A DNA stretch of 64,000 nucleotides from Macrostomum lignano (taxonomy: Eukaryota), in contig NIVC01000092.1 in NCBI GenBank assembly GCA_002269645.1, positions 186,001 through 250,000 of the forward strand. The letters are read 5' to 3'. The notes beneath the pieces were generated by a model, which was not told the DNA's origin, searched no databases, and was given only the letters and a program-made list of their open reading frames with translations. Each line of letters opens with the position of its first letter. Positions within the stretch are counted from its first letter, which is position 1. Both the position numbers and the translations under genes were made by a program. Below, piece after piece: positions 3,006 through 53,035 of the stretch.

Positions 3006-3869
3006 ATGGCCCTCGTCCTCAGGAATGTGTCTCCTCCACCGCTTCACGTCACCATTGATATGTCTTCTGTTGCATGCTCTATGAAGAAGTCATCGAAGTA
3101 TTTCTGCTAAGGTAAATTCTCAGGCACTACAACAGGAATAGTTGTTCAATCGAAGATTTACAGGTAAAATTTTGAGTTCGACACAAAGATATTTGTCCGC
3201 AGTGACGCTAAAGCATCAGCTAAAAGCGCTGATCTCGCTAGTCTGCGAAACTTTCTCACTGACTAAACACGCTTTCCAACAACAATTAGATTGGCAGAAT
3301 GACTCGAACTACGCTCGTACAAGTAGATTACATGCTTCGCTTCGCACATCAATGCCGAATTTATGCTTCTCTGGTTGCTATGGAGACTCAATTTTTTTCT
3401 GCAGCTGCGTCAACTGCTTTATTTTTTGCATGTACGAATGCAAGCAGAAGTATTGATTAATTACGAATATTAACTTTGCATGCATATTGCTCGATCGTTT
3501 ATTTGTACAGTAAATTGTTGTTAACAATCGATGTATTACCGCTGATGCAAGTTGCTCAATTTTTACGTGCTCGGTCGATCACAACTCGATCGGTGAACAA
3601 CGTGCCTCTGTTTCTTTTAAGTCTGCTTTGATAGATTTTAACAAACTACAGGAAGAAAAGAAGAATCTGAAAAAGAAACAGGAAATTCATAACTTGCTGC
3701 CTACTTGCAATAGTGTAGCTAGAAAATTACTGGTCAAAAATAACAAAAAGGTTAAATTTAATTTAAAATGGTTCTAAACTTGGACCCCCGAATATAAGAG
3801 GCCATCAAGCTCGACGAATGACAGGAGCTCAACTTTTACCACTCCTGAACGTGACATCCACCGGCCAGA

Positions 3870-5513: not shown

Positions 5514-5981
5514 ACGGAGCTGTGGCGTCACTCGCGCGGCCACATGCGGCCGGAGCGAACTCTGCAGTGCCCCAGCTGTGAGTTCGTCACCGAGCACCGG
5601 CATCACCTGCTCTATCACGAGCGTAACCATAGCAACCAGAAGCCGTTCGCCTGCGACGAGTGCAACTACAGGTGCGTGAACCGCAGCATGCTGAATTCGC
5701 ACAAGAGGTCGCATTCAACTGAGAGGCAGTTCACCTGCCGAGACTGCGGCTACGCTACTAAATACCGGCACTCGCTGCTCAGTCATCTCAGGAAACGAGG
5801 TCACGGACCACCTCCGATGATGAAACCAGCGGAGCCGCTTCAGCAGCAGCAACAGTTGCCTACTGGTGAACTGGGCCAAGAGATTGTCGAGTTCTGGAGG
5901 CTGATAGGAGCTGCCGCTGCCGCCGCTGCAGCCGTGGCGGCCGCATCAGCGGCAGCTGGGAAGCCAAATACTGAGAGTTGA
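5514..5981 (+). CDS. hb: hunchback-like TF, exon 2 (ZF1 end to ZF4 plus Q/A-rich tail)
   Basis: Acceptor CCAAG|[70 protein letters not shown]...[23 protein letters not shown] closely matches the diagnostic central fingers of Drosophila Hunchback (CPFVTEFKHHLEYH, CVNKSMLNSH, YATKYCHS). Confidence 0.92.
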
Positions 5982-9525: not shown

Positions 9526-10491
9526 CAGGGGCGTGGCCATGGATTTTATGGTGGGAGGACAAAACCAGGAATTCTAAATGTACATTATGTTTAGAATCTG
9601 TGTTCGGTGTTTCATTTTGGCGCCGCAGGCACTCATTTTGGCGCCGCAGGCACTCATTTTGGCGCCACAGGCACTCATTTTGGCGCCGCAGACAGGCTCT
9701 CATTTTCACGCCGCAGGCACTCATTTTGGCGCCGCAGACAGGCTCTCATTTTCACGCCGCAGGCACTCATTTTAGCGCCGCAGGCACTCATTTTGGCGCC
9801 ACAGGCACTCATTTTGGCGCCGCAGGCACTCATTTTGGCGCCGCAGACAGGCTCTCATTTTCACGCCGCAGGCACTCATTTTGGCGCCGCAGGCACTCAT
9901 TTTGGCGCCGCAGACAGGCTCTCATTTTCACGCCGCAGGCACTCATTTTGGCGCCGCAGGCACTCATTTTGGCGCCGCAGACAGGCTCTCATTTTCACGC
10001 CGCAGGCACTCATTTTGGCGCCGCAGACAGGCACTCATTTTGGCGCCGCAGGCACTCATTTTGGCGCCGCAGACAGGCTCTCATTTTCACGCCGCAGGCA
10101 CTCATTTTAGCGCCGCAGGCACTCATTTTGGCGCCGCAGGCACTCATTTTGGCGCCACAGGCACTCATTTTGGCGCCACAGGCACTCATTTTGGCGCCAC
10201 AGGCACTCATTTTGGCGCCACAGGCACTCATTTTGGCGCCGCAGGCACTCATTTTAGCGCCGCAGGCACTCATTTTAGCGCCACAGGCACTCATTTTGGC
10301 GCCACAGGCACTCATTTTGGCGCCACAGGCACTCATTTTGGCGCCACAGGCACTCATTTTGGCGCCACAGGCACTATTTTTTGTCACCCTGAAGCAAAAT
10401 TTTTCATTTACGGGTCACAAGGTAGGGTGGGGGACAAAGCATTGACATGTCCCCCCCTGTCCTCCCTGTCCCCCCGGTGGCGACGCCCCTG
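9526..10491. mobile_element. Non-autonomous hAT-type element carrying an internal 21-bp minisatellite
   Basis: TIRs CAGGGGCGTGGCCA / TGGCGACGCCCCTG. Exact 8-bp TSD ATGAAAAT at 9518-9525 and 10492-10499. Internal array GCAGGCACTCATTTTGGCGCC at ~9610-10375. Confidence 0.9.
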
Positions 10492-14524: not shown

Positions 14525-15790
14525 GACATCAGACATTGATCCTCTGACGTCCCAATTGATCCCCTGACATCCCGATTGATCTCCTGACACCCCGATTGAT
14601 CTCCTGACATCCCAATTGATCTCCTGACATCCCGATTGATCTCCTGACATCCCGATTGATCTCCTGACATCCCAATTGATCTCCTGACATCCCGATTGAT
14701 CTCCTGACATCCCGATTGATCTCCTGACATCCCGATTGATCTCCTGACATCCCGATTGATCTCCTGACATCCCGATTGATCTCCTGACATCCCGATTGAT
14801 CTCCTGACATCCCGATTGATCTCCTGACATCCAGATTGATCTCCTGACATCCCGATTGATCTCCTGACATCCCGATTGATCTCCTGACATCCCGATTAAT
14901 CTCCTGACATCCCGATTGATCTCCTGACATCCCGATTAATCTCCTGACATCCCGATTGATCTCCTGACATCCCGATTGATCTCCTGACATCCCGATTGAT
15001 CTCCTGACATCCCAATTGATCTCCTGACATCCCGATTGATCTCCTGACATCCCGATTGATCTCCTGACACCCCGATTGATCTCCTGACATCCCAATTGAT
15101 CTCCTGACATCCCGATTGATCTCCTGACATCCCAATTGATCTCCTGACATCCCGATTGATCTCCTGACACCCCGATTGATCTCCTGACATCCCGATTGAT
15201 CTCCTGACATCCCGATTGATCTCCTGACATCCCGATTGATCTCCTGACATCCCGATTGATCTCCTGACATCCCGATTGATCTCCTGACATCCCGATTGAT
15301 CTCCTGACACCCCGATTGATCTCCTGACATCCCAATTGATCTCCTGACATCCCAATTGATCTCCTGACATCCCGATTGATCTCCTGACATCCCAATTGAT
15401 CTCCTGACATCCCAATTGATCTCCTGACATCCCGATTGATCTCCTGACATCCCGATTAATCTCCTGACATCCCGATTGATCTCCTGACATCCCGATTGAT
15501 CTCCTGACATCCCGATTGATCTCCTGACATCCCGATTGATCTCCTGACATCCCGATTGATCTCCTGACATCCCGATTGATCTCCTGACATCCCGATTGAT
15601 CTCCTGACATCCCGATTGATCTCCTGACATCCCGATTGATCTCCTGACATCCCGATTAATCTCCTGACATCCCGATTGATCTCCTGACATCCCGATTAAT
15701 CTCCTGACATCCCGATTGATCTCCTGACATCCCGATTGATCTCCTGACATCCCGATTGATCTCCTGACATCCCGATTGATCTCCTGACGT
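14525..15790. repeat. 20-bp minisatellite CTCCTGACATCCCGATTGAT, NCX intron 4
   Basis: About 63 near-perfect units. Confidence 0.97.
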
Positions 15791-15920
15791 CCTACCCGAT
15801 TACCTAACATTCACTTTTGTTCCTGATCTTGAAACAAACAATTCTTAATTCATTGAACCCATTTTCCGATATCCAACTATTTTCCCCTGACACTCATTTC
15901 GCAATCCCCCGACGCCCTAC

Positions 15921-20398: not shown

Positions 20399-20674
20399 GC
20401 TTTGCGATAAAGTGGGTGCCATATTATTTTGCCGGCCGAGGCCCCCCTGCCAATCCCTATGGCAACATGTAGTTGAAGAACTCTTAGGACAGCGGCATTG
20501 GTGAATCACAAATAACGTTGCTTGACTTCTGTGCCGCGTGACATTGTGAGTTTGAGGGGAAGGGGTGTAGCTGTTGCTGGGTGGATATTGTCAGCAGCGA
20601 ATTTCAGCAGGAAATGTTGGCAAGCTTCTACTCTGTAAGTCTCTGTCCAAATGATCAAAGAGGCCCTGTCTCAC

Positions 20675-21322
20675 CGTCATCGTTAATGATGGTGACCTGG
20701 TTGATCTTCTTCGGTCCCAGTCTGGCCAGCTTCTGGTCTTTCTCCAGCGTCAGCTTCACAAAGAACGTCTCGTCGGGCTCCCACTGGTTGTCGTCGATGA
20801 TCTCCACGTCCACAGTCTGCTGGGTCTCGTCCGGTTCAAATACGACCGTCTTTTTCAATGGCACGTAATCTTCATTCTTCGTAGCCGTTCCGTCCACCGT
20901 TTCGGCTTTGACTACTACGCGTTGCTTGACGTTGCCATAGCGACGGATGGTCAGTCGGGCTCGCTGGTCCCGTTCCAGCACGGCAACGCTGGTTGAGGTG
21001 AACTCAACCACGGACAGCCGGCCGTTCTCCGTCAGGGCGTCCTGCTTGGCCTTCAGGTGCGGATCAGACGAGGCTCCGTCGCCGGCGCCCTCAATCTCGG
21101 CCAGTTTGCCCTGCAGCTTCTCCGGCAGCTGCACCTGCAGTTTATGGCCGCCCATCATCTGCCTAGTGGCGTTGATGCGGTACCAGGCCCTGGAGTGCGG
21201 CATGCCTTCGCTGAACTTCTTCAAGGCCAGCCGACGGACCTCCTCCTCGGTCAGGTTGGGATCTTTGCCGATCTGCTTGATGAACTCTCGTAGCTTCTCT
21301 TCGTTGATGTGGTGCGCGTCGT
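20675..21322 (-). CDS. SLC8A: NCX exon 2: linker and Calx-beta domain 1 (CBD1)
   Basis: Acceptor CCCTCAG|AC; SRAWYRINATR; ETVDGTATKNEDY...EIIDDNQWEPDETFFVKL. Donor G|GTGAGA; phases match. Confidence 0.93.
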
Positions 21323-23489
21323 CTGAGGGATGAAAGTTTGGGTTGCACTTTCTAATAACATTATTGTCCGTTACTAAATTTGAAATACCATCAGTATCCT
21401 GCACTTGCAGTTGATCGCAAGTTTGGGAAGGGCTTATTGTGCTCTGGGGAGGGATTTCACATGTTCACGAAGCCGCTAGGAACGAACCTTTCGTTCCGAG
21501 CCAAGCCACACCCATTGCGTCGGCGCCATGTGTAGTCAAAATCATGTGCATATTGCGCTAAAAGCAATTTAGCTCCTTTGTCCCTTATTTCTTGTTGGAT
21601 GCCTATTACCTATAAGAAGCCAGAGTCTTCATTCCAGCACGCACGAGTAACCCGAAACCCCTTCTTCTCAATCAGATCCGGGCGGTTATGTTCCCATCTG
21701 ACAGTCGCAAAATGCACTGTCAGAGGCTGTTCACTTTTGAGCGACGTATTAGAAATATCCCCTATCTAACTGATCCCTGCTTTCGGGGCCTTTGTGCAAA
21801 ATGCCTTTTTGTGACATCACAGAGAGGCTTCCGCATGCCTGAGTATTTCTTCAACTGTCCGCGATCGTGTTTGATGTAGGAAAAGGTTTCCAGTAAAAAT
21901 ATGCAGAGGAACCGGCATAACCATAACTACCGTAGTTGCTTCCTCGACTGTCGCCCTGCTATGCAACTGTGCCCAAACTTCTCTGAAAACTAACAAACGA
22001 CGCCGAAATTCTCTGTAGTAGTCGTTATTCGAAACCAAGCCTTAAGGCACTCGCGTGTGAGTGAGTGCATAACCCAGTCCGAGCTTTCATTTTGGTGCAA
22101 ACAAGGTGACCAATTATGGTAAGAATGCAAATTGCAGTTCGCAGTTTGCGCTAAAAATTAATAATTTAGCTGTAGCTATAGGTAAGAAGTTATATTCCAT
22201 AATTGAGCTTGGGGTCATATCAATCTGGGCATCTGCGCAGTCCTATTGCCAAAGTGAAGTTAACGAAAACTAATTATTTCTGCAGCCATAAGAGGAATCC
22301 CGGCCGATCCTGCAGTTTGGGAACTTTTTCTCCTTGCGGTCCCTACACCAACCTCATCGTCAGTGCCCACTTTTTACGTCTGGATAACCTTTAAAGACAG
22401 GGGTCTGTGCGGCTGGCAACAGGGACTGGTCGGGGGGGACTTCACCCCCTAGCCTGTTTTCGACTAATCGATAGCCGAAAACTCGACCGCCCTATTTGGG
22501 AAGGGAGGGGATGTGGCAGCAGAATCCCGCAACTCGGTTGGGGGGGGGGGGGGGGGTTGGGGTATTAGCCGCAGCCTGTTTGGTACTGTAAATGCGTGGC
22601 ATTTAATTTGTGTCTGCACTGATACGGAATCATCTGACTCTTTGCTGACCTCCAATCGTATCCGGTCGGATTAATTGCTTTTAAATCGGTCCTGTAAACA
22701 TTGAATGGTAATTTTTTTTAAATATCTGGTTGAAAAACCTGGTGATGAAGTTATTCAACGAAGAGTAGCCTGGATCCTCGATGCTAAAAAATAAATTATT
22801 TAGTTTGTTTTAATTGCGTATCGATTTATTCCGCTTTATTGTCGGAGCCGGTGACTTGGATCGTAGCATGGAAGCTTCTTTAAACATTTCAGCAGCCAGC
22901 CGCATCCTTCCTTGTTCCAGGGCTTCGGGCATCAACTTTTGCTGCTACCTACATATCCACAGTTCCTTTCTCCTCTTTCCAAACACACCGACAGCGGGGT
23001 GTCTGGCGAGATTTGCGCCGGGTAGGCATTCAAAAGTGCAACCGGGAGGAGAATACAACAACTGCTGCTGCGGAAGCAGATTGGGCCAGCCATGTTGATA
23101 AATCTAGCGGAGGTTTGGGCTAGAAATGCAAAAGAAGGTAAGAACATTTCCTGGTGAGGGTAATTTCCAGGTAATCTTTTCGAAGCAATATTGTTCCATC
23201 ACCACTGCTTCTAGAGGGCGGCAAAGTAGTAGAAATTTAGTGCGTTAGTCTGAAACAATTGCTCCTAGAAGGATATGCTGTTTTTTACCATTGTAGCTGC
23301 ATATCAGCTTTGGAACCTTTTAATTGCTTGTGCTGAAAACATTTGAATTGGAATTCAAACTGCTTTGGGTCATCTTGGGTGGCATGGGTCTCGTGTACAA
23401 GCAAGTAGGAGATATTTTAACTAAACACTCGTACTGTAGAAGTCCGAGTGTACGCAATATTGACCGTTGCTTTTCTTCTATCCAGCTAA

Positions 23490-23650
23490 CCCTCCGGTCA
23501 CTGAATGGGGAGTCGCTACCCCTTGATCGGTCATTGAATGGGGAGCCGCTACCCCTTGATCGGTCATTGAATGGGGAGCCGCTACCCCTTGATCGGTCAT
23601 TGAATGGGGAGCCGCTACCCCTTGATCCGTCATGAATGAGGAGCCGCTAC
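23490..23650. repeat. 33-bp tandem repeat GGGGAGCCGCTACCCCTTGATCGGTCATTGAAT, about 5 copies
   Basis: 33-bp period, just inside NCX intron 1. Confidence 0.92.
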
Positions 23651-23721
23651 TCCCTTGGATTCTATAAGATTCTTCAAAAAGTGCGCATAAGCTTTTGAAA
23701 CGTGTGGATAAAGGAACTCAC

Positions 23722-24412
23722 GGACAATCAGGCCTTTATTGGCCTCCTTATCAGCCTCAGTTTCCGCTTTCTTGAAGCAGAAGCCCTTGTCCATGATGTA
23801 GGCTGCCACCACCAGGATGAAGAATAGCAGAAAAGTGACCACGCCCTCCCAGAGGTCGATGAAGTCCGGTGAGCTGCACACAAGAATAATGACCAGCCAG
23901 ATGTAGGCAAACTCGGAGAAGGTGGCCGTCACACAGAACACCATGAACTGCTTGATCCGCTTGCCTTCATCGTTGACGGAGCAGATGCACACGGCGGTGA
24001 TGATCAACAGGTTGAAAGCGGCGCTACCGACGATGGTTCCTGGCCCAAGTTCGCCCGCCTCGAACCCGTTGCCGATGATCTCAATGATGGAGAGCAGGAT
24101 CTCCGGTGCACTTGAGCCCAGCGCCATCAGGGATAGGTTGGCCACGGTGTCATTCCAGATCTTAACGTCCACCTGCTCGTCCACGCCGGTGTCCGAGTTA
24201 AAAAATGTCATTTTCCTTGTAGCACTTGTGATTCGTTCGATCGAGGTCATGAAGACATCAGCAACGATAGAGACGCCCATGAATGACCAGAGTAGGCCAA
24301 CTAGGTAGAGTACAGCGCGCACCTCATTTCGCCAGGTGGACTCGTCCAGCAGGGGCAGGATGAGGGAGCTGGCATTCTGGCAGAGAAAAGTTCCGCCGCT
24401 GCAGTTGGACAT
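23722..24412 (-). CDS. SLC8A: Na+/Ca2+ exchanger (SLC8/NCX), exon 1: TM1-5 with alpha-1 repeat
   Basis: RAVLYLVGLLWSFMGVSIVADVFMTSIERIT, WNDTVANLSLMALGSSAPEILLS, GPGTIVGSAAFN. Donor C|GTGAGT at 23722/23721. Confidence 0.95.
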
Positions 24413-27164: not shown

Positions 27165-27390
27165 TTTTCCCCCCGGCCCCACCCAACCTTGTGAACCGTT
27201 ATTATATCTATAATTTTGCTTCAGGGGTGACAAAATATAGTACCTGCGGCGTCAAAATGATTGCCTGCGGCGCCAAAATGAAAGACTGCGGGGCCAAAAT
27301 GAGTGCTTGCGGCGCTAAAATGAAAGACTGCGGCGCTAAAATGAGTGCCGGCGGGGCCAAAATGAGCGCTTCTGAAAATAGTTTGTACAT
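27165..27390 (-). mobile_element. Diverged partial copy of the 9526-10491 hAT element with a short version of the 21-bp array
   Basis: AATTTTGCTTCAGGGGTGACAAAATATAGTACCTGCGGCG is the reverse complement of 10365-10400; about 6 degenerate units follow. Confidence 0.75.
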
Positions 27391-38200: not shown

Positions 38201-39736
38201 GTAGGTAGGTAGGTAGGCATGCAATAAATTTCAGAAATGAGCTGAAAGCAGAATTTAGATAACATTAATATTCAATATATATCATTTATCATAGCAATAA
38301 AACACAATTTCATTTTACTAGGCCTATATATATATTTCTTAGAAACACCTTACTTAAAACTACAAATTTTACTTAAACAATAAGTTCTTAGCACTTTTAA
38401 GTAAAACAACCAATGCAAATGCCAACAGCCTCAATAGATAATAGAATGGACCCTATTGCAGTCAATGGCCATTATTGTACAGCATCTGGCATAGATTGGC
38501 CTTTTATAATGTAGGTGCAATCTGGTATGCTAGTGCAGTCTGGTGCAGGAGCAATAGTGCAACCAGAAATTTGTTGAAAGGTGGATTCTATAGGGTAAAG
38601 ATCCAAGGGGGACAAAGGGGGTGGCTCTGTTTTTGGAAAAAATCTCTTGATCTGCCTTTGATTTTTAGGCATTTGCCTAGAAAGGGGAGGTTGGTTGTGG
38701 CACTATGCAGGAGAGGGGGGCATCTGGCATAGTTTAGACAATAACTACAATAAAGAGAATAAATCTAAATATACTAAATCTCTAAGGTTTGTATGCTTGC
38801 TTGCTTGAATGTCCATAATGCTCTAGAGAAAGCATAATAAAACTAAAGATACAAGTGGTATATTTTTTGCAATTGAGTTCTGGTTGGTGACACGTGGTAA
38901 AAGTACAAATGGGATAAAAATGGAAGTTTATTTAAAATAATTTTTTACTACTCAGCTATTGGACAAAAATTTCTCAACTTTGAGTATAAGAAAAATATTG
39001 AAGACTTCAAGAACTTTCAAGAATCAAGTCAAGTCACTTGTTGGGACTCTAATGGTAAGCATAGGCCTCTAACTATATTTATTATTATGCTTCTATATAG
39101 GTAGAGCCTTTGTCTTATTATACTATAATTGTTTTTAGTTATAATCTCAAGATATGAATAAACTTATGCTAAATACAATCATATTAATTAATTGTTTATA
39201 ATAGCCTAAGTAGGCCTTACAGTTTTAATAATATTGAGTCATATAGGAAATTCTAAAACTGCTACAAAAATTATTGATAAAGTTTTGTCTTGAAATCTAT
39301 TTGAATTATTCCTATAATCCTAGAAAACTCCTTTAAAAATTCAGCATATTCTTGCTTAGAATTAAAATCTTATAGAATCATGTATATATAACCTCTAAAA
39401 TTATACTAGCTACATGACTTAGATTTGAATAAAAAACAGTTTTGAGAGAAAATTTGAAATCCCTTGTATAACATAGTTTGTTCCTTTTGCAACTTGCCTT
39501 GTCTTATTCTCCTTTTGCTTCTTGTTTTTTCCATTTTTTCTCTATATCACTTTTCATTTTTTATCATCTTGCCTTTTTCTTTTTTTGTTTCTTTGTTTTC
39601 TTGTCTTTTTTGCTTCTTTGTCCTCAATTTTGTGATTTACCCTTGGTCTTCTACAAATTATGCTAGCCAGATTGGCTTGGCCAGCTAACAACAACAACAA
39701 CAACAAAATACGCTGTCATGATGGTAAAAGTCAGCG

Positions 39737-42700
39737 TCACAGGGCGCGCTTCATGGCTTGGGCGCGAACAAAGGCCGCGCCACCGGCAGTGTCCGGGGCG
39801 CCGGCGTCAGCCAGCAGACAGTCGACATAACGCCGAGTTCGCGCTTGACCTCGCCGGTAGGGTGCCTGCAGCGTGAGCAGCAGCACCTCCTGCACCGGCT
39901 GTGGGCAGTACGACTCGGCGCGGATGAGATGGCCTGCGAGCTGGAGTCGCCGACGGCGCAGTAGATCACTTGGACGTGGCAGGCCAGCGCGGCGATAGAG
40001 TGCCGCGTTGGTGACTCGCTCGACGCCGATGTTGAAGGCGGCGCGCAGCAGACCAGCGTGCGCCGCATCGACTTGCTGTTCGAGTGAGTCCGTCAGCGTC
40101 CAGGTCTCGGCGTTGTACAGCAGGACGGTCTCGATTACCGCCTGGAACAGCGCCGCCCTCTGGCGGTCCGGTAGGGCCTCGGACTGCAGGACTGCCCTCA
40201 CAGAACGAAAGGCAGCCCAGGCAAGCCCGCGGCGGCGTCGCAGGTCCTCGCGAGCGTCTGGAACCAGACCGCCGAGGTAGACGAACTGCTGACATCGCGG
40301 GAGTTCGGTCGCCTGCCCGTCAGCGCCTCGGCAAAATATTGCAGCCTCGATGTCGTCCGGCACGCAGAGCACAACGGTCTTCTGTGTGTTGACCACCAGG
40401 CCGACACTCGCCGCAACGGCAACCAGCCTGTCCAGCTGCCGTTGGGCGCCCTCGACGGTCGAGGACAGCAGGGCGAGGTCGTCGGCGTAGCCAAGCACGC
40501 TGAGCCGCTTCTCCGGTTGACGTCGACCCACGCGTCGCTGCAGCAGAAAACCGTCGTCGTCGGTAGGAAGAGCAGTCCGCAGCACCCAGTCAAGCACCAG
40601 GACGAACAGAAACGGCGCCAGCGTATCTCCCTGAAGCACTCCGGAGGATGTCTCAAAGGAGTCCGATAGGCCGTCCGGTGTTGTCACAGCAGCTGTCGTA
40701 TCACGGTACATCGCCATGACGGCGGAGATCAGCTGCTCAGGCACGTTGTACGCGCGGAGCACCATTGGAAGCACGGCTCTGACAACCGAGTCGAATGCCT
40801 TCTTGAAATCAATAAAGATTAAAATCAGTATCGACTGACGAATCCGCGCCTCCTCGATGACTCGGCGAAGAGCCAGGATCTGCGCCACTGTGCCGCGATG
40901 GGGCCGGAACCCGTTCTGCTCTGGGCGCAGGTACGGATCCAGCACGGGCTGCAACCGCGAAAGCAGCATCCGGTTGAACAGCTTCGCTGCACAGGACTGA
41001 AGGCAGATGCCTCGATGGTCTTCAAGCCTAGTGGTGCCCGGCTTCTTTGGAACAGCGACGATGTGCGCCGTGGTCCATTCGTTGGGCGCCGCCTCACCGA
41101 AGAGCACGCGGTTCATCACTCTGGCGACCTCAGCGGCCACACAGGGGATGCGCAGCGCCTCGATGGGCACCTCGTCCGGACCCAGCGCTTTCCCGCCCGG
41201 TGACTGCTGGGCGAGCTTGACAACGTCGGCTGCGTTGACTGGGGCTACGCTGAAACTCTCCTCTGCCGGCAGCGGCGTCTCCGGCGGCAGCGTCAGACTG
41301 TCTGGCAGCGGGGGTGGCGGCGCGTTGACGATGGCGGCGAAGAACTCGCGCAGCTCGTTCCTACGCTCGTCCGGCGTGTCACCAGCCAGGTTCAGCGGAT
41401 TGCGCCGCTTTCGTCCCGTCAGAGCGTTGATGGCGGACCAGGCCACGCGCCCTCTGGCATCGGGCCCAGCGGCAGAGACAGCCTGAATGGCGTCATCGAC
41501 AGCCGCTTGTTGGCGCTGCAGGTAGACAGCTGCCAGAGCTGCCTCTGCCTCGCGGGTTGGTCGCCTGCTCAAGCGGAGCTTCTCCAGATCTTCCCTCGCT
41601 GCCTGAATCGCGGGGTCGTCCTGCCAGACCGGCTGCCCACGTTGAGCCGGCTGCATCATCGGGACTGCTTGCTCCGCGGCGGTTCTGATTGCAGCGCACA
41701 CTTCCGCATACTCGGCACTTCCACGCTTGTCGCCCAGCGCGGTGTTAAAGGCGCTAGCAAAGCGACGCTGCGTATCGGTGGCTCTGAGCGCGCGGTAGTA
41801 GCGCCGCGGTGGCCGCTTCGGCGGACGGTAGAGCGGATCGCGAAGGTTGAGGTCGCAGATGAGGAGCCGGTGATCGGACCGCAGAGCCAGCGGCGTGATG
41901 GTGCGGCAGTTGACGGCGCGACGACGCTCACGGAAACGCACGAGCACGTGGTCGAGCTGTGCTTGTCTCCGGGTTGCGTTCCTGCCACGCGCGTTCCGTC
42001 GCCTCCGCTTGCAGCCCACGAAGGTTGCGAGACCGCTCAGTGGCTTGCGGAAGCGGGTGTTGGCCGACACCATGTCCTGCCTCTCCAGGAAGTCCTCTAG
42101 TGCCTCGGTGTTGTTGTTCCCGCGTGGCGTCACGAACAGCGACCTCTCGGACCTACGCAGGACTGCGTTCAGGTCTCCGAGGGCGACCGCTGTGTCACGC
42201 TGCGCCGTCGCCTCTACCTGCACTGAGAGCTGCTCGAAAAACTCTTGAGCCTCGTCAGGGCGTGTGGCAGGGGGCGCGTACGCGCAGAACAGGCGAGCAT
42301 TCCGACCGCGTAGCCGGACGTCGATCCGAAGCAACCGGGGGGACAGGGAGATGCAGCGACAGCTCTGCTGCAGCCTCGGCCCGATCAGCGCTCCAACTCC
42401 TCCACGGCCTCGCTGGTCCGCAGAAGTATAGTAGAGGGTCCACCCGGCGCCCAAGTCCTCACAATGAAGTCCCGGGTCGGCCTTGATAGACACCTCCTGC
42501 AGCGAGATGATGTCGCAGCTCAGGTCGTACGCCAGCTTCGCCAGCACCCCTCTACGCCAAGCAGCCTTGAGAGTGCGGCAGTTCAGCGTCCCGACCCGAA
42601 GCATGCCCTGTGGTACGGCTGGGGCTCGATGCAGTTGAGCCTCACGGTCCCCGGCGCCACCCGGAGGATCCGAGTGGACCCGCGCGGCAGCTCGACGGGC

Positions 42701-42850
42701 GGCGCCACGCAGCCGGCCTCGTCGGTTCCGCTCACGCCGGCGCTCAACACGCCGACGGGCGCTCCGCTGCCCTCGCTTGGTCCTGCCGCATTTGGCCGCC
42801 GCAGCAGTTAAGCGCGGCTCTCCGCTCTGACCACGAGGAGGTAGCGGCAT
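39737..42850 (-). CDS. RTE-clade non-LTR retrotransposon ORF (APE endonuclease + reverse transcriptase), intact 1037 aa
   Basis: APE motifs GTLNCRTL, LQEV, GDLNA, LDHVLV, SDHRLL. RT motifs PEQNGFRPHR, FIDFKKAFDSV, GVLQGDTLAPFLF, YADD. RTE-like C-terminus LLYNAETW...LQLAGHLIR; single ORF. Confidence 0.95.
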   Translation of the reverse strand: MPLPPRGQSGEPRLTAAAAKCGRTKRGQRSARRRVERRRERNRRGRLRGAARRAAARVHSDPPGGAGDREAQLHRAPAVPQGMLRVGTLNCRTLKAAWRRGVLAKLAYDLSCDIISLQEVSIKADPGLHCEDLGAGWTLYYTSADQRGRGGVGALIGPRLQQSCRCISLSPRLLRIDVRLRGRNARLFCAYAPPATRPDEAQEFFEQLSVQVEATAQRDTAVALGDLNAVLRRSERSLFVTPRGNNNTEALEDFLERQDMVSANTRFRKPLSGLATFVGCKRRRRNARGRNATRRQAQLDHVLVRFRERRRAVNCRTITPLALRSDHRLLICDLNLRDPLYRPPKRPPRRYYRALRATDTQRRFASAFNTALGDKRGSAEYAEVCAAIRTAAEQAVPMMQPAQRGQPVWQDDPAIQAAREDLEKLRLSRRPTREAEAALAAVYLQRQQAAVDDAIQAVSAAGPDARGRVAWSAINALTGRKRRNPLNLAGDTPDERRNELREFFAAIVNAPPPPLPDSLTLPPETPLPAEESFSVAPVNAADVVKLAQQSPGGKALGPDEVPIEALRIPCVAAEVARVMNRVLFGEAAPNEWTTAHIVAVPKKPGTTRLEDHRGICLQSCAAKLFNRMLLSRLQPVLDPYLRPEQNGFRPHRGTVAQILALRRVIEEARIRQSILILIFIDFKKAFDSVVRAVLPMVLRAYNVPEQLISAVMAMYRDTTAAVTTPDGLSDSFETSSGVLQGDTLAPFLFVLVLDWVLRTALPTDDDGFLLQRRVGRRQPEKRLSVLGYADDLALLSSTVEGAQRQLDRLVAVAASVGLVVNTQKTVVLCVPDDIEAAIFCRGADGQATELPRCQQFVYLGGLVPDAREDLRRRRGLAWAAFRSVRAVLQSEALPDRQRAALFQAVIETVLLYNAETWTLTDSLEQQVDAAHAGLLRAAFNIGVERVTNAALYRRAGLPRPSDLLRRRRLQLAGHLIRAESYCPQPVQEVLLLTLQAPYRRGQARTRRYVDCLLADAGAPDTAGGAAFVRAQAMKRAL

Positions 42851-42875
42851 TTATCTGCACCGTGGTGCAAATAAA
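42784..42875 (-). ncRNA. HDV-like self-cleaving ribozyme core at the LINE 5' end (P1 5' strand not found)
   Basis: Minus strand: P2 UGCCGC, P3/L3 ACC-UCCUCGU-GGU (HDV antigenome ACC-UCCUCGC-GGU), CAGAGC-GG, P4 GCCGC...GCGGC, J4/2 GCCAA, P2' GCGGCA. A hairpin UUUAUUUGCACC/GGUGCAGAUAAA lies upstream. Confidence 0.55.
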
Positions 42876-44166
42876 TTAAGACTGCAAATAAATTAAGACT
42901 GCAAATAAATTAAGACTGCAAATAAATTAAGACTGCAAATAAATTAAGACTGCAAATAAATTAAGACTGCAAATAAATTAAGACTGCAAATAAATTAAGA
43001 CTGCAAATAAATTAAGACTGCAAATAAATTAAGACTGCAAATAAATTAAGACTGCAAATAAATTAAGACTGCAAATAAATTAAGACTGCAAATAAATTAA
43101 GACTGCAAATAAATTAAGACTGCAAATAAATTAAGACTGCAAATAAATTAAGACTGCAAATAAATTAAGACTGCAAATAAATTAAGACTGCAAATAAATT
43201 AAGACTGCAAATAAATTAAGACTGCAAATAAATTAAGACTGCAAATAAATTAAGACTGCAAATAAATTAAGACTGCAAATAAATTAAGACTGCAAATAAA
43301 TTAAGACTGCAAATAAATTAAGACTGCAAATAAATTAAGACTGCAAATAAATTAAGACTGCAAATAAATTAAGACTGCAAATAAATTAAGACTGCAAATA
43401 AATTAAGACTGCAAATAAATTAAGACTGCAAATAAATTAAGACTGCAAATAAATTAAGACTGCAAATAAATTAAGACTGCAAATAAATTAAGACTGCAAA
43501 TAAATTAAGACTGCAAATAAATTAAGACTGCAAATAAATTAAGACTGCAAATAAATTAAGACTGCAAATAAATTAAGACTGCAAATAAATTAAGACTGCA
43601 AATAAATTAAGACTGCAAATAAATTAAGACTGCAAATAAATTAAGACTGCAAATAAATTAAGACTGCAAATAAATTAAGACTGCAAATAAATTAAGACTG
43701 CAAATAAATTAAGACTGCAAATAAATTAAGACTGCAAATAAATTAAGACTGCAAATAAATTAAGACTGCAAATAAATTAAGACTGCAAATAAATTAAGAC
43801 TGCAAATAAATTAAGACTGCAAATAAATTAAGACTGCAAATAAATTAAGACTGCAAATAAATTAAGACTGCAAATAAATTAAGACTGCAAATAAATTAAG
43901 ACTGCAAATAAATTAAGACTGCAAATAAATTAAGACTGCAAATAAATTAAGACTGCAAATAAATTAAGACTGCAAATAAATTAAGACTGCAAATAAATTA
44001 AGACTGCAAATAAATTAAGACTGCAAATAAATTAAGACGCAAATAAATTAAGACGCAAATAAATTAAGACGCAAATAAATTAAGACGCAAATAAATTAAG
44101 ACGCAAATAAATTAAGACGCAAATAAATTAAGACGCAAATAAATTAAGACGCAAATAAATTAAGAC
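42869..44166. repeat. Perfect array: 68 x 17-bp AAATAAATTAAGACTGC, then 8 x 16-bp AAATAAATTAAGACGC, then a partial unit
   Basis: 42869 + 68x17 = 44025, the start of the first 16-mer; no internal indels seen. Confidence 0.97.
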
Positions 44167-44269
44167 CAGCTAGCAGTTGCATATGTAAGACTATACACAG
44201 AATGCAGAAAAATCCTAAAGTATGTAGACAAAAAATCTTACAGAAGGCAGACAAGACATCTCTGAATGC

Positions 44270-45790
44270 AGCCGAGAAATCCCAGATAATGAAGTCAAGA
44301 AATCCTAGAAAATGCACTTAAAAATTCCAATAAATACAGCCAAGAAATCACAGTGAATGCAGCCAAGAAATCACAGTGAATGCAGCCAAGAAATCCCAGT
44401 GAATGCAGCCAAGAAATCACAGTGAATGCAGCTAAGAAATCCCAGTGAATGCGGCCAAGAAATCCCAGTGAATGCAGCCAAGAAATCACAGTGAATGCAG
44501 CCAAGAAATCACAGTGAATGCAGCCAAGAAATCCCAGTGAATGCAGCCAAGAAATCACAGTGAATGCAGCCAAGAAATCCCAGTGAATGCAGCCAAGAAA
44601 TCCCAGTGAATGCGGCCAAGAAATCCCAGTGAATGCAGCCAAGAAATCCCAGTGAATGCAGCCAAGAAATCACAGTGAATGCAGCCAAGAAATCCCAGTG
44701 AATGCAGCCAAGAAATCCCAGTGAATGCAGCCAAGAAATCACAGTGAATGCAGCCGAGAAATCCCAGATAATGAAGTCAAGAAATCCTAGAAAATGCACT
44801 TGAAAATTCCAATAAATACAGCCAAGAAATCCCAGTGAATGCAGCCAAGAAATCCCAGTGAATGCAGCCAAGAAATCCCAGTGAATGCGGCCAAGAAATC
44901 ACAGTGAATGCAGCCAAGAAATCACAGTGAATGCAGCCAAGAAATCACAGAAAATGCAGTTAAGAAATCACCGTGAATGCAGCCAAGAAATCACAGTGAA
45001 TGCAGCCAAGAAATCACAGTGAATGCAGCCAAGAAATCACAGTGAATGCAGCCAAGAAATCACAGTGAATGCAGCCAAGAAATCACAGTGAATGCAGCCA
45101 AGAAATCACAGTGAATGCAGCCAAGAAATCACAGTGAATGCAGCCAAGAAATCACAGTGAATGCAGCCGAGAAATCCCAGATAATGAAGTCAAGAAATCC
45201 TAGAAAATGCACTTGAAAATTCCAATAAATACAGCCAAGAAATCCCAGTGAATGCAGCCAAGAAATCACAGTGAATGCAGCCAAGAAATCCCAGTGAATG
45301 CAGCCAAGAAATCACAGTGAATGCAGCTAAGAAATCCCAGTGAATGCAGCCAAGAAATCCCAGTGAATGCAGCCAAGAAATCACAGTGAATGCAGCCAAG
45401 AAATCACAGTGAATGCAGCCAAGAAATCCCAGTGAATGCAGCCAAGAAATCACAGTGAATGCAGCCAAGAAATCCCAGTGAATGCAGCCAAGAAATCCCA
45501 GTGAATGCGGCCAAGAAATCCCAGTGAATGCAGCCAAGAAATCCCAGTGAATGCAGCCAAGAAATCCCAGTGAATGCAGCCAAGAAATCCCAGTGAATGC
45601 AGCCAAGAAATCCCAGTGAATGCAGCCAAGAAATCACAGTGAATGCAGCCGAGAAATCCCAGATAATGAAGTCAAGAAATCCTAGAAAATGCACTTGAAA
45701 ATTCCAATAAATACAGCCAAGAAATCCCAGTGAATGCAGCCAAGAAATCACAGTGAATGCAGCCAAGAAATCCCAGAAAATGCAGTTAAG
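44270..45790. repeat. 23-bp satellite GCAGCCAAGAAATC(C/A)CAGTGAAT with higher-order structure
   Basis: A diverged spacer block recurs at 44271, 44753, 45166 and 45648. Confidence 0.95.
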
Positions 45791-46679
45791 AAATCGCTTA
45801 GATTGCAGCTAAATTTTATTCAATCAAAAGGATACAATTTAAAAATGTCCAAGTAATTTTCAATTTACACGTTTTGGCCCAGCGCCAGAAAGCCCTGTCA
45901 GATAAGTAAGATCGTGTTTCGCCTGTAGTTTCTCAATTTTCACTTCAGTTTATTAAATAGAAAGTCTCTTCTTTCCTTTGCACCAGCGAATAATTTGTAA
46001 TGGCTACAATTGGGTACTATTAGGAAAATGGCAGCACTGTGGGATTTTGTCCCAGGTCTGGGATGCGAACCTGTTCTGCTTGGACTATGCTTTCTCTGAC
46101 CCACATTTTGGACTCACCACTTGTGAGAACCGGCCCTGTCATTAGAGACATCTTGGTTGCTTTTTCTTTTGCCAAATCTCAATACCTGGATGGCTCTGCA
46201 TCTTCTTGGGCTTCTCTGCTTGGTCAGGGAAGCCTACTGTAGGTGGACGAGGTAATCGGTTATGGCGAAAGCAATGCACAGAAATGCAGAAATTTTATTC
46301 CTGAATTATGGAGAGAAATCTAAGCTAAGCTCTTTGTATATTGGCCTCCTTTTGAGTTGAATAGATCGATACAGTCATCTGCTTGAGGAAGGAAAGGTAA
46401 GGGAGAATGCAGTCAGCTCCTTTGATGCCTAACGACCAAGTAAAAGAAAGCGAAATGACCAGATAAATCCAGGCTGACGCTGAAGCTTAAGACTTTGGCT
46501 AACAGGCTCTCAATATCTTTAAAAAAAACTGTCATGAAAATATTCTAATAGAATGCTCAAATTTCAGGTAGCTAAAGGTAAGCTGAAATATGCATTGACC
46601 ATTGCATTGAAATTTGTAGCATATTTTGTGTATGTAATATTCCATGTTGCACAAGACATGCTATTACAGGCACAACAGA

Positions 46680-47606
46680 ATAGCCAAGAAATCCCATCGA
46701 CTGCAGACAAATCCCATAGACTGCGGAAAAATCCCATAGACTGCGGACAAATCCCATAGAATACAGACAATAAATCCCATAGAATACAGACAATAAATCC
46801 CATAGAATACAGACAATAAATCCCATAGAATACAAACAAGAAATCCCATAGAATACAGACAATAAATCCCATAGAATACAAACAATAAATCCTATAGAAT
46901 ACAGACAATAAATCCTATAGAATACAAACAATAAATCCTATAGAATACAGACAATAATAAATCCCATAGAATACAGACAATAAATCCTATAGAATACAGA
47001 CAATAAATCCTATAGAATGCAGCCAAGAAATCCCATCGACTGCAGACAAATTCCATAGAATACAGACAAGAAATCTCATCGACTGCAGACAAATCCCATA
47101 GAATACAGACAAGAAATCCCATCGACTGCAGACAAATTCCATAGAATACAGACAAGAAATCCCATCGACTGCAGACAAATTCCATAGACTGCGGACAAGA
47201 AATCTCATCGACTGCAGACAAATCCCATAGAATACAGACAAGAAATCCCATCGACTGCAGACAAATTCCATAGACTGCGGACAAGAAATCTCATCGACTG
47301 CAGACAAATCCCATAGAATACAGACAAGAAATCCCATCGACTGCAGACAAATTCCATAGAATACAGACAAGAAATCCCATCGACTGCAGACAAATTCCAT
47401 AGACTGCGGACAAAAAATCCCATCGACTGCAGACAAATCCCATAGAATACAGCCAATAAATCCCATCGACTGCAGACAAATTCCATAGAATACAGACAAG
47501 AAATTCCATCGACTGCAGACAAATCCCATAGAATACAGACAAGAAATTCCATCGACTGCAGACAAATCCCATAGAATACAGACAAGAAATCCTATAGAAT
47601 GCAGCC
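46680..47606. repeat. Related satellite (CCATAGAATACAGACAAWAAATC / CCATCGACTGCAGACAAAT)
   Basis: Tandem 19-23 bp units; resumes briefly at 48997-49045 on the far side of the LTR element. Confidence 0.92.
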
Positions 47607-48633
47607 CAAATTCTTGCAGCACCCAAATTCTCAGATTTCTAACACTCTCCGGCTTCCGCTGCTCAAAGATCCACCTCCGGTAGCTGGCAACCATCTGCTC
47701 AGGCAACTTTTTCTGCAACCTCACATACAACATCCCATCTTGAAGCTCTGCCTCTTTACCCGCATCCTCAAGGTTAACGACAGCCACATCCAGTAGATTA
47801 GCAAAGCTTTTCAGATCCTTGGCGTTTCCATTTCGCACGATCGGGAAGCTGTCCAGCTCTTCCAAGTGCAGAGCAAGTTGCCTACGCTGTCCACCAAATT
47901 CTCTCTCTAGTCTCTCTTTTGCAGCCTCATATGCAGCAGCGGAGTGTCCTAGATGTTCTATAACCTTCAAAGCTTCACCGCTGAGGTACTGCCTAAGCTG
48001 CAGCAACTTGAATTCTGGTGTTGCAGGGGCGCTGTCGATGCACGCAACAAAGGCTGCCTTCCAGTTTTCATACTTCTGCTTTTCTCCACTAAACGTTGGG
48101 ATTTCAACACGCTTCAGCATCTTCCACAAATCCTTTGAAAGCTCCTTCGGGTTGGATCCTTTGCTGGACGCAGCACTGCCAGAAAGTTTGTCTAACTCAC
48201 CAGCTGCTTCTTCTTGGTCACCCGCAGCGTTCTCACCGCTTGAACTCGCGGCAGGAGGGGCTTCTTGGGCGCGCTGCAATCCCCGGTTTCTGGAACTTTC
48301 GACGCGCTGAATGGCAGCTTGGTAGTCGCGCTCAGTCTCCTCCATCTCTTCTAGTAGGCGTTGTCGCCTCTCGTTGTCCTTGGCGTCGGCGTAGCCTTGA
48401 TGCAGTTCTTCCTGGATGGCGCTGACCAGGTCCTGCAGGTCGGATAGAGCATCGCAGGTAGCTTGCACTTCGTCATCAGAGGCGCGCGTCTTTAGCAGCC
48501 AAGACAGCTTGTTTTTGCAACGAGTGAACGCTGCTTTTTTTCGGGATTTCTCGAAGCGCAGCTTCTCTAAACGCAGCGCGCCGGCATCGTCTTGGGCTTC
48601 CTGTTGTTGTTCATTGGCGTCGTCACTGTCCAT
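47607..48633 (-). pseudogene. BEL/Pao LTR-retrotransposon gag (DUF1759-like), 3'-truncated by satellite
   Basis: VEIPTFSGEKQKYENWKAAF...KLLQLRQYLSGEALKVIEHL...YEAAKERLEREFG is typical of BEL/Pao Gag. After RIWVLQEF the frame runs into satellite; no protease, RT or integrase follows. Confidence 0.9.
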
Positions 48634-48698
48634 CTTGGTCCTTCGTTTCACAGTAGGATTCTATTGCTTGCCACGTCAGTGGTAAGTTAGGCTTGTCC

Positions 48699-51153: not shown

Positions 51154-51159
51154 GTGCGG

Positions 51160-52375
51160 CTGGCATCTCAGTGTCTCAACTGACATCCCAGTGTCTCAGC
51201 TGGCATCTCAGTGTCTCAACTGACATCTCAGTGTCTCAGCTGACATCCAAGTTTCTCAGCTGACATCTCAGTGTCTCAGCTGACATCCAAGTTTCTCAGC
51301 TGGCATCTCAGTGTCTCAGCTGACATCCAAGTGTCCCAGCTGACATCCAAGTGTCTCAGCTGACATCCAAGTGTCTCAGCTGACATCTCAGTGTCTCAGC
51401 TCACATCTCAGTGTCTCAGCTGACATCTCAGTGTCTCAGCTGACATCTCAGTGTCTCAGCTGACATCCAAGTTTCTCAGCTGGCATCTCAGTGTCTTAGC
51501 TGACGTCCAAGTTTCTCAGCTGGCATCTCAGTGTCTTAGCTGACATCTCAGTGTCTCAGCTCACATCTCAGTGTCTCAGCTGACATCTCAGTGTCTCAGC
51601 TGACATCTTAGTGTCTCAGCTGACATCTCAGTGTCTCAGCTGGCATCTCAGTGTCTCAGCTGACATCTCAGTGTCTCAGCTGACATCTCAGTGTCTCAGC
51701 TGACATCTCAGTGTCTCAGCTGACATCTCAGTGTCTCAGCTGACATCCAAGTTTCTCAGCTGGCATCTCAGTGTCTTAGCTGACGTCCAAGTGTCTCAGC
51801 TGACATCTCAGTGTCTCAGCTCACATTTCAGTGTCTCAGCTGACATCCCAGTGTCTCAGCTGACATCCAAGTGTCTCAGCTGGCATCTCAGTGTCTTAGC
51901 TGACGTCCAAGTGTCCCAGCTGACATCTCAGTGTCCCAACTGACATCTCAGTGTCTCAGCTGTTATCTCAGTGTCTCAGCTGACATCCAAGTGTCTCAGC
52001 TGACATCTCAGTATCTTAGCTGACATCTCAGTGTCTCAGCTGACATCTCAGTGTCTCAGCTGACATCTCAGTGTCTCAGCTGGCATCTGAGTGTCTCAGC
52101 TGACATCTCAGTGACTCAGCTGATATCCAAGTTTCTCAGCTGGCATCTCAGTGTCTCAGCTGGCATCTGAGTGTCTCAGCTGACATCTCAGTGACTCAGC
52201 TGATATCCAAGTTTCTCAGCTGGCATCTCAGTGTCTTAGCTGACGTCCAAGTGTCCCAGCTGACATCCAAGTGTCCCAGCTGACATCCAAGTGTCCCAGC
52301 TGACATCTAAGTGTCTCAGCTGACATCTCAGTGTCTCAAATGACATCTCAGTGTCTTAAATGACATCCAAGTGTC
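51160..52375. repeat. 20-bp minisatellite GTGTCTCAGCTGACATCTCA, Sos intron 1
   Basis: Direct reading. Confidence 0.97.
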
Positions 52376-52483
52376 TCGTTTTCTGACATCCCATGCTCTT
52401 GTCTGACATTCTGTTCAGTAAACTAGCTCGTAAACTGGCATATTAATAATGCTTGATTTCGCAACCGCACCCGTCTCTGACAG

Positions 52484-52689: not shown

Positions 52690-52905
52690 TGACATCTCAA
52701 GGCTGACATCCAAATGTCTCATGTGACATTCCAATCCTCATCTGACATCCCGGAATGTCTCATCTGACATAATCTGACATCCCGGAATGTCTCATCTGAC
52801 ATAATATGACATCCCGGAATGTCCCATCTGACATCCCGGAATGTCTCATCTGACATCCCAATGTCTCATCTGACATCCGGAATGTCTCATCTGACATCCC
52901 AATGT
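52690..52905. repeat. ATCTGACATCCCGGAATGTCTC repeat, Sos intron 2
   Basis: Degenerate tandem units. Confidence 0.85.
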
Positions 52906-53035
52906 CTCAGCCTAAACTATACAATCGTAAATTTTTATTAACCGCAGTACCCTTTTGCAAACAAACTTTCGATACATATCGGCTGAAAATTCGACTTGTA
53001 CATAAACGGCTCTGCTATTGCGCAATTATTTGCAG

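Follow-up and report, generated by a model that had tools for sequence, protein, structure and literature searches.

The question raised by this locus is whether a long and perfectly regular tandem array beside a retrotransposon belongs to the element or to the repeat-rich DNA around it. We analyzed a stretch of 64,000 nucleotides (nt) from Macrostomum lignano (assembly GCA_002269645.1, contig NIVC01000092.1, positions 186,001 to 250,000), hereafter called the window, in which a long interspersed element (LINE) on the minus strand runs at its 5′ end into 1.3 kb of 17-nt repeats. We consider it probable that this array is the 5′-terminal repeat region of the LINE and has no status as an independent satellite. 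Positions refer to the window, and the features are collected in Table 1.

The element was classified as a young, intact RTE-like retrotransposon of the non-LTR type (LTR, long terminal repeat), and it is the only LINE copy in the window. Its 3.2-kb unit encodes one protein of 1037 amino acids (aa), with an apurinic-type endonuclease (APE; PF03372, Exo_endo_phos, residues 88-305) and a reverse transcriptase (RT; PF00078, RVT_1, residues 601-860); a second open reading frame (ORF) or ORF1 is absent. The 3′ untranslated region (UTR) is short, and the (TTG)n tail ends on the element strand in ...TATTTTGTTGTTGTTGTTGTTGT. The GC content of the LINE (39688-42882) is 59-68%, versus 23-35% for host DNA, and that of its own repeat unit is 24%. 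The relatives found on metagenome contigs are also GC-rich, with AT-rich flanks.

The 16-nt core of the array, GCAAATAAATTAAGAC on the plus strand, occurs 77 times between 42867 and 44166 with zero substitutions, and Tandem Repeats Finder (TRF) reported period 17 and 77 copies at 42866-44166. Successive cores are spaced by 17 nt 68 times and then, at the distal end, by 16 nt 8 times. The initial annotation had described 68 17-mers and 8 distal 16-mers running without a gap from the LINE's 5′ end. That description was exact, and inclusion of the native proximal unit brings the total to 69 17-mers and 8 16-mers, or 1301 bp. The array joins the unique 5′ sequence of the element directly (...UUUGCA followed by CCACGGUGCAGAUAAAUG), comprises an exact integer number of units counted from G1, and has G1 as its outer end. 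The 16-mers are one base short, a T on the plus strand that corresponds to A17 of GCA/GTC on the element strand, where the slash marks the unit junction. A17 is the base immediately 5′ of that junction. Its loss is the sole variant in the array and is limited to the 8 outermost units, and the switch from 17 to 16 nt is located outside any homopolymer.

The same 7-mer, CCAGCTA, abuts both the tail and the last unit, as had been noticed in the initial annotation. Because it adjoins both, the target-site duplication (TSD) of this young insertion encloses the array. The first C of the 5′ copy is shared with GAC of the unit and doubles as G1 of the outermost unit. The probability that a 7-mer match so placed arises by chance ranges from about 4e-4, when position pairs are drawn at random from the window, to 7e-4 under a composition model, and the empty allele is expected to read ...TTGGCCAGCTAGCAGTTGC... 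at the insertion site. Had the 17-mer been an unlinked satellite, copies would be expected apart from the LINE; none of the core was found elsewhere in the window on either strand.

An exact look-up of the ORF in public assemblies returned nothing on record. Homologs with 52-75% protein identity were found in Macrostomum lignano and in marine metagenome and run assemblies, on contigs of approximately element length, the nearest named homologs being unannotated Macrostomum lignano proteins. Twelve contigs were compared, of which 7 had a 5′ end of the window type; in L003, L004, L085, L086 and L089 the 5′ UTR was long and of a different type. The tail ...TATTTTGTTGTTG also ends L001, L087, L002, L090 and L091.

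In L084 (57% aa identity), the contig opens on a run of perfect 17-mers, GUCUUAGCAUAUUUUCA, at least 8.5 units long; next comes a hairpin like that of the window, UAUUUUCAC-UGC-GGUGGAAAUAUG, with an AUG at its 3′ foot. In L001 (65% identity, with a TTG tail as in the window), exactly the first 30 nt of the contig have a period of 17 (...CAUGAUAUUUUCA GUGCCAUGAUAUUUUCA, then CAAC), or at least 1.8 units. Logan contigs come from a de Bruijn assembly with k = 31, so that 30 equals k-1, and a stop at this length is expected when a contig enters a perfect tandem array. The 30 periodic nt of L001 are thus probably the signature of a collapsed perfect array. L088 (75% identity, N-terminal half) carries a degenerate second unit at 17-nt spacing, making about 2 units, and the contig of L090 begins within the hairpin. 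Unit number varies accordingly, from 77 in the window down to 1 in both L002 and L087. By hand comparison, the unit of L084 is identical to that of the window at 13/17 positions and to that of L001 at 12/17.

Fourteen of the 17 nt of the unit come from the conserved 5′ end of the LINE itself, and L087, L084 and L001 have homologous sequence there. The array was thus rightly taken to be element-derived and inside the TSD, since its unit passes without a break into the family's conserved 5′ end and shares homology with it. As homologous repeats occupy the same position in two relatives only 57-65% identical, we regard the 17-nt reiteration as a heritable, copy-number-variable trait of the lineage and not as an accident of this locus. 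The initial annotation had left generality as a condition, and the period-17 repeats of L084 and L001, with the degenerate second unit of L088, now supply it. Among the 331 loci compared, the units of the window, L084 and L001 did not occur elsewhere, although this is a weak control. A metagenome scan with a protein profile yielded 80 loci, with few close relatives and no added 5′ end. The pattern CCTCCN{13,43}GGMGAGCCGCGC gave chance matches in GC-rich bacteria and phages when run against genome and viral contigs, being too unspecific, and a TSD search at L002 and L087 found none, which is uninformative.

The long-UTR relative L085 begins with a 17/18-nt direct repeat, CCGTGGACAT(T/G)TTTTCTT twice (11-45 of its contig), directly following a TATTTTGTTG stretch at the contig start, and this may be another 5′-terminal duplication of similar length. 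L040 resembled a satellite derived from a LINE 3′ end, a reading that was rejected: it is a distant, 5′-truncated RTE with 33% identity and a tail of ATG repeats, and the 30-mer satellite on either side of it (1-1367 and 3349-3653) was in place before the RTE inserted.

What lies at the conserved 5′ end gives the unit its meaning. Rfam matched the window element to drz-agam-1, a ribozyme family of the hepatitis delta virus (HDV)-like type, at 42786-42859 on the minus strand (28.8 bits versus a gathering score of 37; E = 0.014), and a scan of 10 related loci gave no HDV-like match. The seven aligned 5′ ends share one architecture, P1(5′) - hairpin - P2(5′) GCCGC - P3(5′) RYC - UCC, continuing as P3(3′) - 6-nt P1(3′) - GG (P1.1) - P4 - C(A/U)AA - P2(3′). 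In hand-extracted modules, P2, P3, P1.1 and P4 in nested double-pseudoknot order, together with the C in J4/2, were present in 7/7 members. P1 is perfect and covaries in L001 (GUGCCA/UGGCAC), L002 (GAGCCA/UGGCUC) and L087 (GUUCCU/AGGGAC); its 5′ strand always lies 7-8 nt upstream of the hairpin and in L001 falls within the repeated 17-mer. P3 occurs as ACC/GGU, GUC/GAC, GCC/GGC and GCC/GGU, with compensatory change at 2 positions, and P2 reads UUGGC/GCCAA in L084 versus GCCGC/GCGGC in the others, with compensatory change at 3 positions. For the whole fold in the 7 members, 97% of cells were paired, 9 pairs were changed on both sides, and 0/500 shuffles were as good; in slid-partner controls, pairing dropped to 23-46%. 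Covariation in P1, P2 and P3 supports the assignment of the 5′ end as a putative HDV-like ribozyme, with predicted self-cleavage 5′ of G1.

The hairpin of the window element, UUUAUUUGCACC-AC-GGUGCAGAUAAA, folds at -15 kcal/mol (z = -4.6, 0/200 shuffles as good), and its stem covaries in L001, L002, L084, L087, L088 and L090. The initial annotation had recognized this hairpin, correctly, but had put it just upstream of the ribozyme core. It would instead be an insert in the joining segment J1/2 of the ribozyme, as the P1 5′ strand lies upstream of it, within the repeat unit. The unit contains that strand and most of the 5′ arm of the hairpin. The P1 position in the proximal unit is homologous, by position, to the perfect P1 strands of L001, L002 and L087. 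Because the repeat unit opens with the 6 nt of the P1 5′ strand, it would correspond to nt +1 to +17 of the processed RNA, and each unit would therefore start at a potential cleavage site, with the junction CA^G. The window and L084, which have the long sequenced arrays, share the P1 strand GUCUUA and its poor pairing with their own 3′ strands; for L084 this means 4/6 pairs in register, while hand alignment gives 6 bp if one bulge is allowed. By contrast, pairing is perfect in L001 and in the single-unit copies L002 and L087, so that weak P1, and with it weak cleavage, may (n = 3) be tied to array retention. 

Several features of the ribozyme region were observed alongside. In L001, L002, L084, L087, L088 and L090, a stem-loop of 25-44 nt stands in L3, directly after UCC, and Rfam would miss the relatives because of this insertion. 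L3 of the window copy has the canonical 7 nt, UCCUCGU, a difference of 10 codons from the relatives. The core is also coding sequence (42785-42850, minus strand; MPLPPRGQSGEPRLTAAAAKCG), and in the window, L084, L087, L088 and L090, the J1/2 hairpin has the A of the start codon as its final base. Two conserved peptides near the N terminus, GEPR and AAAAK, coincide with P4, so that protein conservation there may reflect RNA structure. An alternative P1, GC(AG)UCU/AGAGC, with the cut before GCAGUC, was rejected, since the insertion begins at GUCUUAA.

Several points weigh against our interpretation. The ribozyme modules were extracted under the guidance of the model, which biases the fold statistics toward it, so that these are supportive and no independent proof. 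In the window, P1 (GUCUUA with CAGAGC) forms 4/6 pairs, 2 of them G-U, and the Rfam score is under the gathering threshold; for these reasons, cleavage at G1 in the window copy is deduced from the relatives. To our knowledge, a stem-loop insert in L3 has no precedent among HDV-like ribozymes. L002 and L087 lack an array and show just one unit, the arrays of L084 and L001 were read without their 5′ flanks, and the source genome is represented by one copy. The evidence both for the ribozyme and for array growth is drawn from sequence.

The host itself supplies the strongest competing explanation, which is that the LINE arrived with 1-2 units and that slippage or unequal exchange in the host then expanded them to 77 in situ. 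This is a live alternative because the host is extremely prone to minisatellites, with 78 TRF rows in 64 kb, and this too counts against us. The window contains some 40 different minisatellite arrays, whose units range from 12 to 45 bp; one of them starts 90 bp past the TSD (44263-45795). Growth of an array of at least 2 units would preserve both boundaries and the integer phase, and L002, L087 and L088 show that 5′ ends with 1-2 units exist. However, such growth from at most 2 units to 77, although possible, would need very fast turnover, as no substitution arose in the array and both the TSD and the 3.1-kb ORF stayed perfect. Expansion in place also leaves unexplained why long perfect homologous arrays stand at the same place in L084 and probably in L001, and why the only variant affects the junction base in a strictly terminal block. 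We judge it rather unlikely.

The units could also serve a function, in a reading compatible with the array being the 5′-terminal region of the LINE. The 17-mers may be reiterated mini-promoter or initiator units, with transcription starting in any of them. Every junction in the window, L084 and L001 reads T(G/T)CAGT, in agreement with the initiator consensus sequences BBCABW and TCAGTY. The outer end of the array lies 1 nt from the would-be +1, and monomer arrays of mouse L1 have additive promoter activity (PMC6454616). The motif is short and degenerate, though, with an estimated chance of about 20% per 17-mer, the ribozyme cleavage site accounts for the same CA^G, and the copy begins at G1 and not at A17. 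An initiator function is in our judgment a minority possibility.

A third explanation places the making of the whole array within this one insertion, through telomerase-like reiterative copying by the RT, or its repeated template jumps, at the 5′ end of an RNA with a single unit. It would account for a unit made of the first 17 nt of the processed RNA, for the outer end at G1 and for a junction-base variant in the units synthesized last. Template jumping and "extra template" junctions are documented for the R2 protein (PMC11331408, PMC3774820). Yet a one-unit RNA offers no microhomology between nt 1-3 (GUC) and nt 18-20 (CCA), and 76 consecutive precise jumps would be required. For lineages only 57-65% identical, a repeat that is carried along and modified is simpler than one rebuilt each time. 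The initial annotation had suggested, as one possibility, that the array was born here by telomerase-like RT reiteration; the homologous arrays in the relatives point to an inherited or recurrent trait, and we find an origin within this single event improbable.

It is very improbable that the array has nothing to do with the LINE, being either a satellite already at the site or a flanking one acquired by 5′ transduction, or that it is an assembly artifact: perfect short-unit arrays do assemble poorly, but 14/17 unit nt belong to the LINE's conserved 5′ end, the array is enclosed by the TSD, the same feature appears in independent assemblies of two other samples, and the 17-to-16 switch is away from homopolymers. 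A pre-existing satellite and 5′ transduction were rejected on the unit's identity with the conserved 5′ end and its place inside the TSD. For this copy, a LINE that inserts specifically into a 17-mer satellite, in analogy to R2, was also rejected, because repeats stand on its 5′ side only and the TSD sequence is unrelated to them.

Returning to the array as the 5′-terminal region of the LINE, we propose the following course. The lineage would begin with an HDV-like ribozyme having the P1 5′ strand in nt 1-6, the hairpin of nt 8-33 in J1/2 and the core in the first codons. With at least two units, any of them could supply P1, and cleavage at an upstream unit would then pass on the units downstream of it. 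The weak P1 seen in the window copy and in L084 would leave upstream units in place, in keeping with the length of the two arrays. On balance, we favor the view that the array came in with the insertion. In the window copy, it would have formed part of the retrotransposed nucleic acid: a donor RNA with many units would have remained uncut at the proximal unit, owing to the poor P1 pairing of this copy, and would have had its 5′ end at G1 of a unit.

Units may be gained as the 3′ end of the nascent cDNA realigns or jumps at the repeated 5′ end of the RNA. Such realignment would place new units and the variant lacking A17 at the distal end, where they are seen. The single-base switch, which had been read as a sign of polarity, indeed hits the exact junction base, fitting a process at RNA or cDNA ends. 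The joining of nt 17 to nt 1 without an extra base likewise indicates an event at such an end, and DNA duplication is less apt because it has no reason to break exactly at the first base of the element. We hold a growth step at the level of the RT to be possible, short of probable. Slippage or unequal exchange at the DNA level may further alter array length. Unit phase, the G1 outer end and the terminal block of junction variants fit template jumping, and they fit inheritance or DNA slippage as well; the anatomy is equally consistent with RT reiteration here, inheritance from a multi-unit donor and later slippage.

Ribozyme and RT might even act together as a repeat-adding machine that extends the cDNA by 17 nt at a time, or by 16 nt where the terminal A is passed over. 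Cleavage at the junctions would yield RNA ends, a 5′-OH G1 and an A17 with cyclic phosphate, and the RT would repeatedly realign on, or jump to, unit-ending RNA at the element's 5′ end. If this were true, each retrotransposition could lengthen the array in a polar manner akin to telomerase and seed a minisatellite at a new locus. We consider the idea unlikely.

HDV-like ribozymes at the 5′ ends of non-LTR elements were reportedly described by Eickbush and Eickbush in 2010 and by Ruminski et al. and Sanchez-Luque et al. in 2011. According to three papers, they occur in R2, RTE, Baggins and L1Tc (PMC3774820, PMC3185411, PMC8501958). The predicted structure here resembles them in its nested double pseudoknot at the extreme 5′ end, in a cleavage 5′ of G1 that would define the RNA, and in an ORF starting within or beside the ribozyme. 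It differs in that the P1 strand and part of J1/2 are reiterated up to 77 times, that L3 of the relatives holds a stem-loop, and that the window copy combines a canonical L3 with a poor P1 and a sub-threshold Rfam score. A flatworm RTE carries a different 5′ ribozyme, a twister variant, beside its TSD (PMC8501958).

The 5′ junctions of R2 show tandem duplications of 13-28 nt whose length equals the offset of ribozyme cleavage (PMC3774820), and Eickbush and colleagues described how sequence 3′ of the ribozyme cut propagates in later cycles (PMC3774820). In cells, the R2 protein yields "extra template" 5′ junctions (PMC11331408). As in R2, we find a short tandem repeat at a LINE 5′ end whose phase and length would be set by the cut site. 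However, R2 duplicates target 28S sequence, usually as one extra copy, whereas here the element's own first 17 nt are present in tens of copies at a site outside ribosomal DNA.

The feature is real, and its layout resembles a miniature of the mouse L1 monomer arrays. In mouse and rat L1, copy-number-variable tandem units likewise form the LINE 5′ end inside the TSD (PMC6454616, PMC9022269), with the same unsolved question of what restores arrays in the face of 5′ loss; the proposals include second-strand priming as well as unequal crossing-over (PMC6454616, PMC9022269). The unit here is 17 nt versus about 200 bp, includes a ribozyme strand and forms perfectly homogeneous arrays. Promoter activity is demonstrated for L1 monomers, whereas the initiator-like motif at our junctions is known from sequence.

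Satellites seeded by transposable elements include Tetris in Drosophila virilis (PMC4079207) and the DTC84 miniature inverted-repeat transposable element (MITE) of the clam Donax (PMC3879986). They share with our array a short tandem repeat, borne by a transposable element, that has grown to satellite-like length. They are, however, DNA transposons or MITEs with internal repeats, whereas here the terminal segment at the RNA end of an intact LINE is repeated. Telomerase, the repetitive cDNA of DRT2 (PMC12039810) and R2 template jumping show that tandem DNA can arise by repeated copying of a short RNA with realignment; unlike in those systems, RT reiteration is inferred here from unit phase and the polarity of one variant. 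A LINE with a reiterated ribozyme P1/J1/2 segment was not found in the literature, an absence that is weak because many subscription papers were outside the search.

How LINE 5′ ends are maintained or rebuilt is unresolved in general, mouse L1 monomers being the best-known example. The question can be studied in very compact form in this lineage, with a 17-nt unit, a phase that would be fixed by a ribozyme, perfect arrays and a natural junction variant marking polarity. It makes testable whether arrays grow at the RNA/cDNA step or at the DNA level, whether upstream units survive through weak P1 pairing, and whether minisatellites of kilobase length can start at new loci from LINE 5′ ends. A further outcome of the comparison is a set of putative HDV-like ribozymes, overlooked by current Rfam models, in which J1/2 holds a hairpin, L3 carries an insertion and the start codon is embedded.

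Table 1. Features of the LINE, its putative ribozyme and its 5′ array (window coordinates; nt numbers and RNA motifs refer to the element strand)
Feature	Position	Strand	Basis or remark
TSD copy, 3′ side; CCAGCTA on plus strand, TAGCTGG on element strand	39681-39687	.	abuts tail; identical to 44166-44172
3′ microsatellite tail, TTTT(GTT)n / (TTG)n on element strand	39688-39708	-	direct reading
Single intact ORF, 1037 aa	39737-42850	-	apurinic-type endonuclease and reverse transcriptase
Putative HDV-like ribozyme core, within first 22 codons	42785-42848	-	sub-threshold Rfam match and architecture shared by 7 members
P2 (predicted)	42844-42848 / 42785-42789	-	
P3 (predicted)	42840-42842 / 42830-42832	-	
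L3, UCCUCGU	42833-42839	-	
P1 3′ strand, CAGAGC (predicted)	42824-42829	-	
P1.1, GG (predicted)	42822-42823	-	
P4 (predicted)	42795-42821	-	
J4/2, CAAAU	42790-42794	-	
J1/2 hairpin	42850-42875	-	5′ arm nt 8-19, loop AC, 3′ arm nt 22-33
Proximal (native) unit, GUCUUAAUUUAUUUGCA; element nt +1 to +17	42866-42882	-	nt 1-6 (42877-42882) at position of P1 5′ strand
68 further perfect 17-mers	42883-44038	-	core spacings
8 distal (5′-most) perfect 16-mers without A17	44039-44166	-	outermost begins at G1 against TSD
TSD copy, 5′ side; CCAGCTA	44166-44172	.	abuts outermost unit

The surroundings of the array, with a GC content of 0.23-0.35, are rich in other repeats. The initial annotation had envisaged the LINE as a route to the many minisatellites of the region, an idea that is not borne out here, since none of the other approximately 40 arrays adjoins a LINE. 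The array beyond the TSD is a 23-mer minisatellite, TGAATGCAGCCAAGAAATCCCAG, of about 67 copies and unrelated to the LINE; as it lies next to the insertion, the host evidently makes minisatellites without this LINE. A non-repeat motif of about 90 bp, cagccgagaaatcccagataatgaag..., recurs at about 44270 and about 44750, which suggests a higher-order duplication. By TRF consensus, one 21-mer family, TCATTTTGGCGCCGCAGGCAC, is present at 9612-10380 and 27231-27371, 17 kb apart and in opposite orientation. Several other arrays have cores in common; CTGACATC, for example, is found in those at 14535-15792, 51159-52377 and 52703-52909. Because this family and this core recur at separate sites, some minisatellite families are dispersed.

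Between minisatellite arrays, a 554-aa ORF on the minus strand (46987-48651) carries DUF1759, which we take to be a gag-like domain associated with BEL/Pao LTR retrotransposons; the ORF is probably another mobile element. The window is DNA of an animal, and fragments of host genes lie at 54-1085, 5544-5981, 20655-21404 and 23630-24412, with a CAS-type Serine_rich domain, C2H2 zinc fingers and exons of a Na/Ca exchanger (Calx-beta, Na_Ca_ex). The best match of the exchanger was to the brachiopod Lingula (51%), followed by rotifers.

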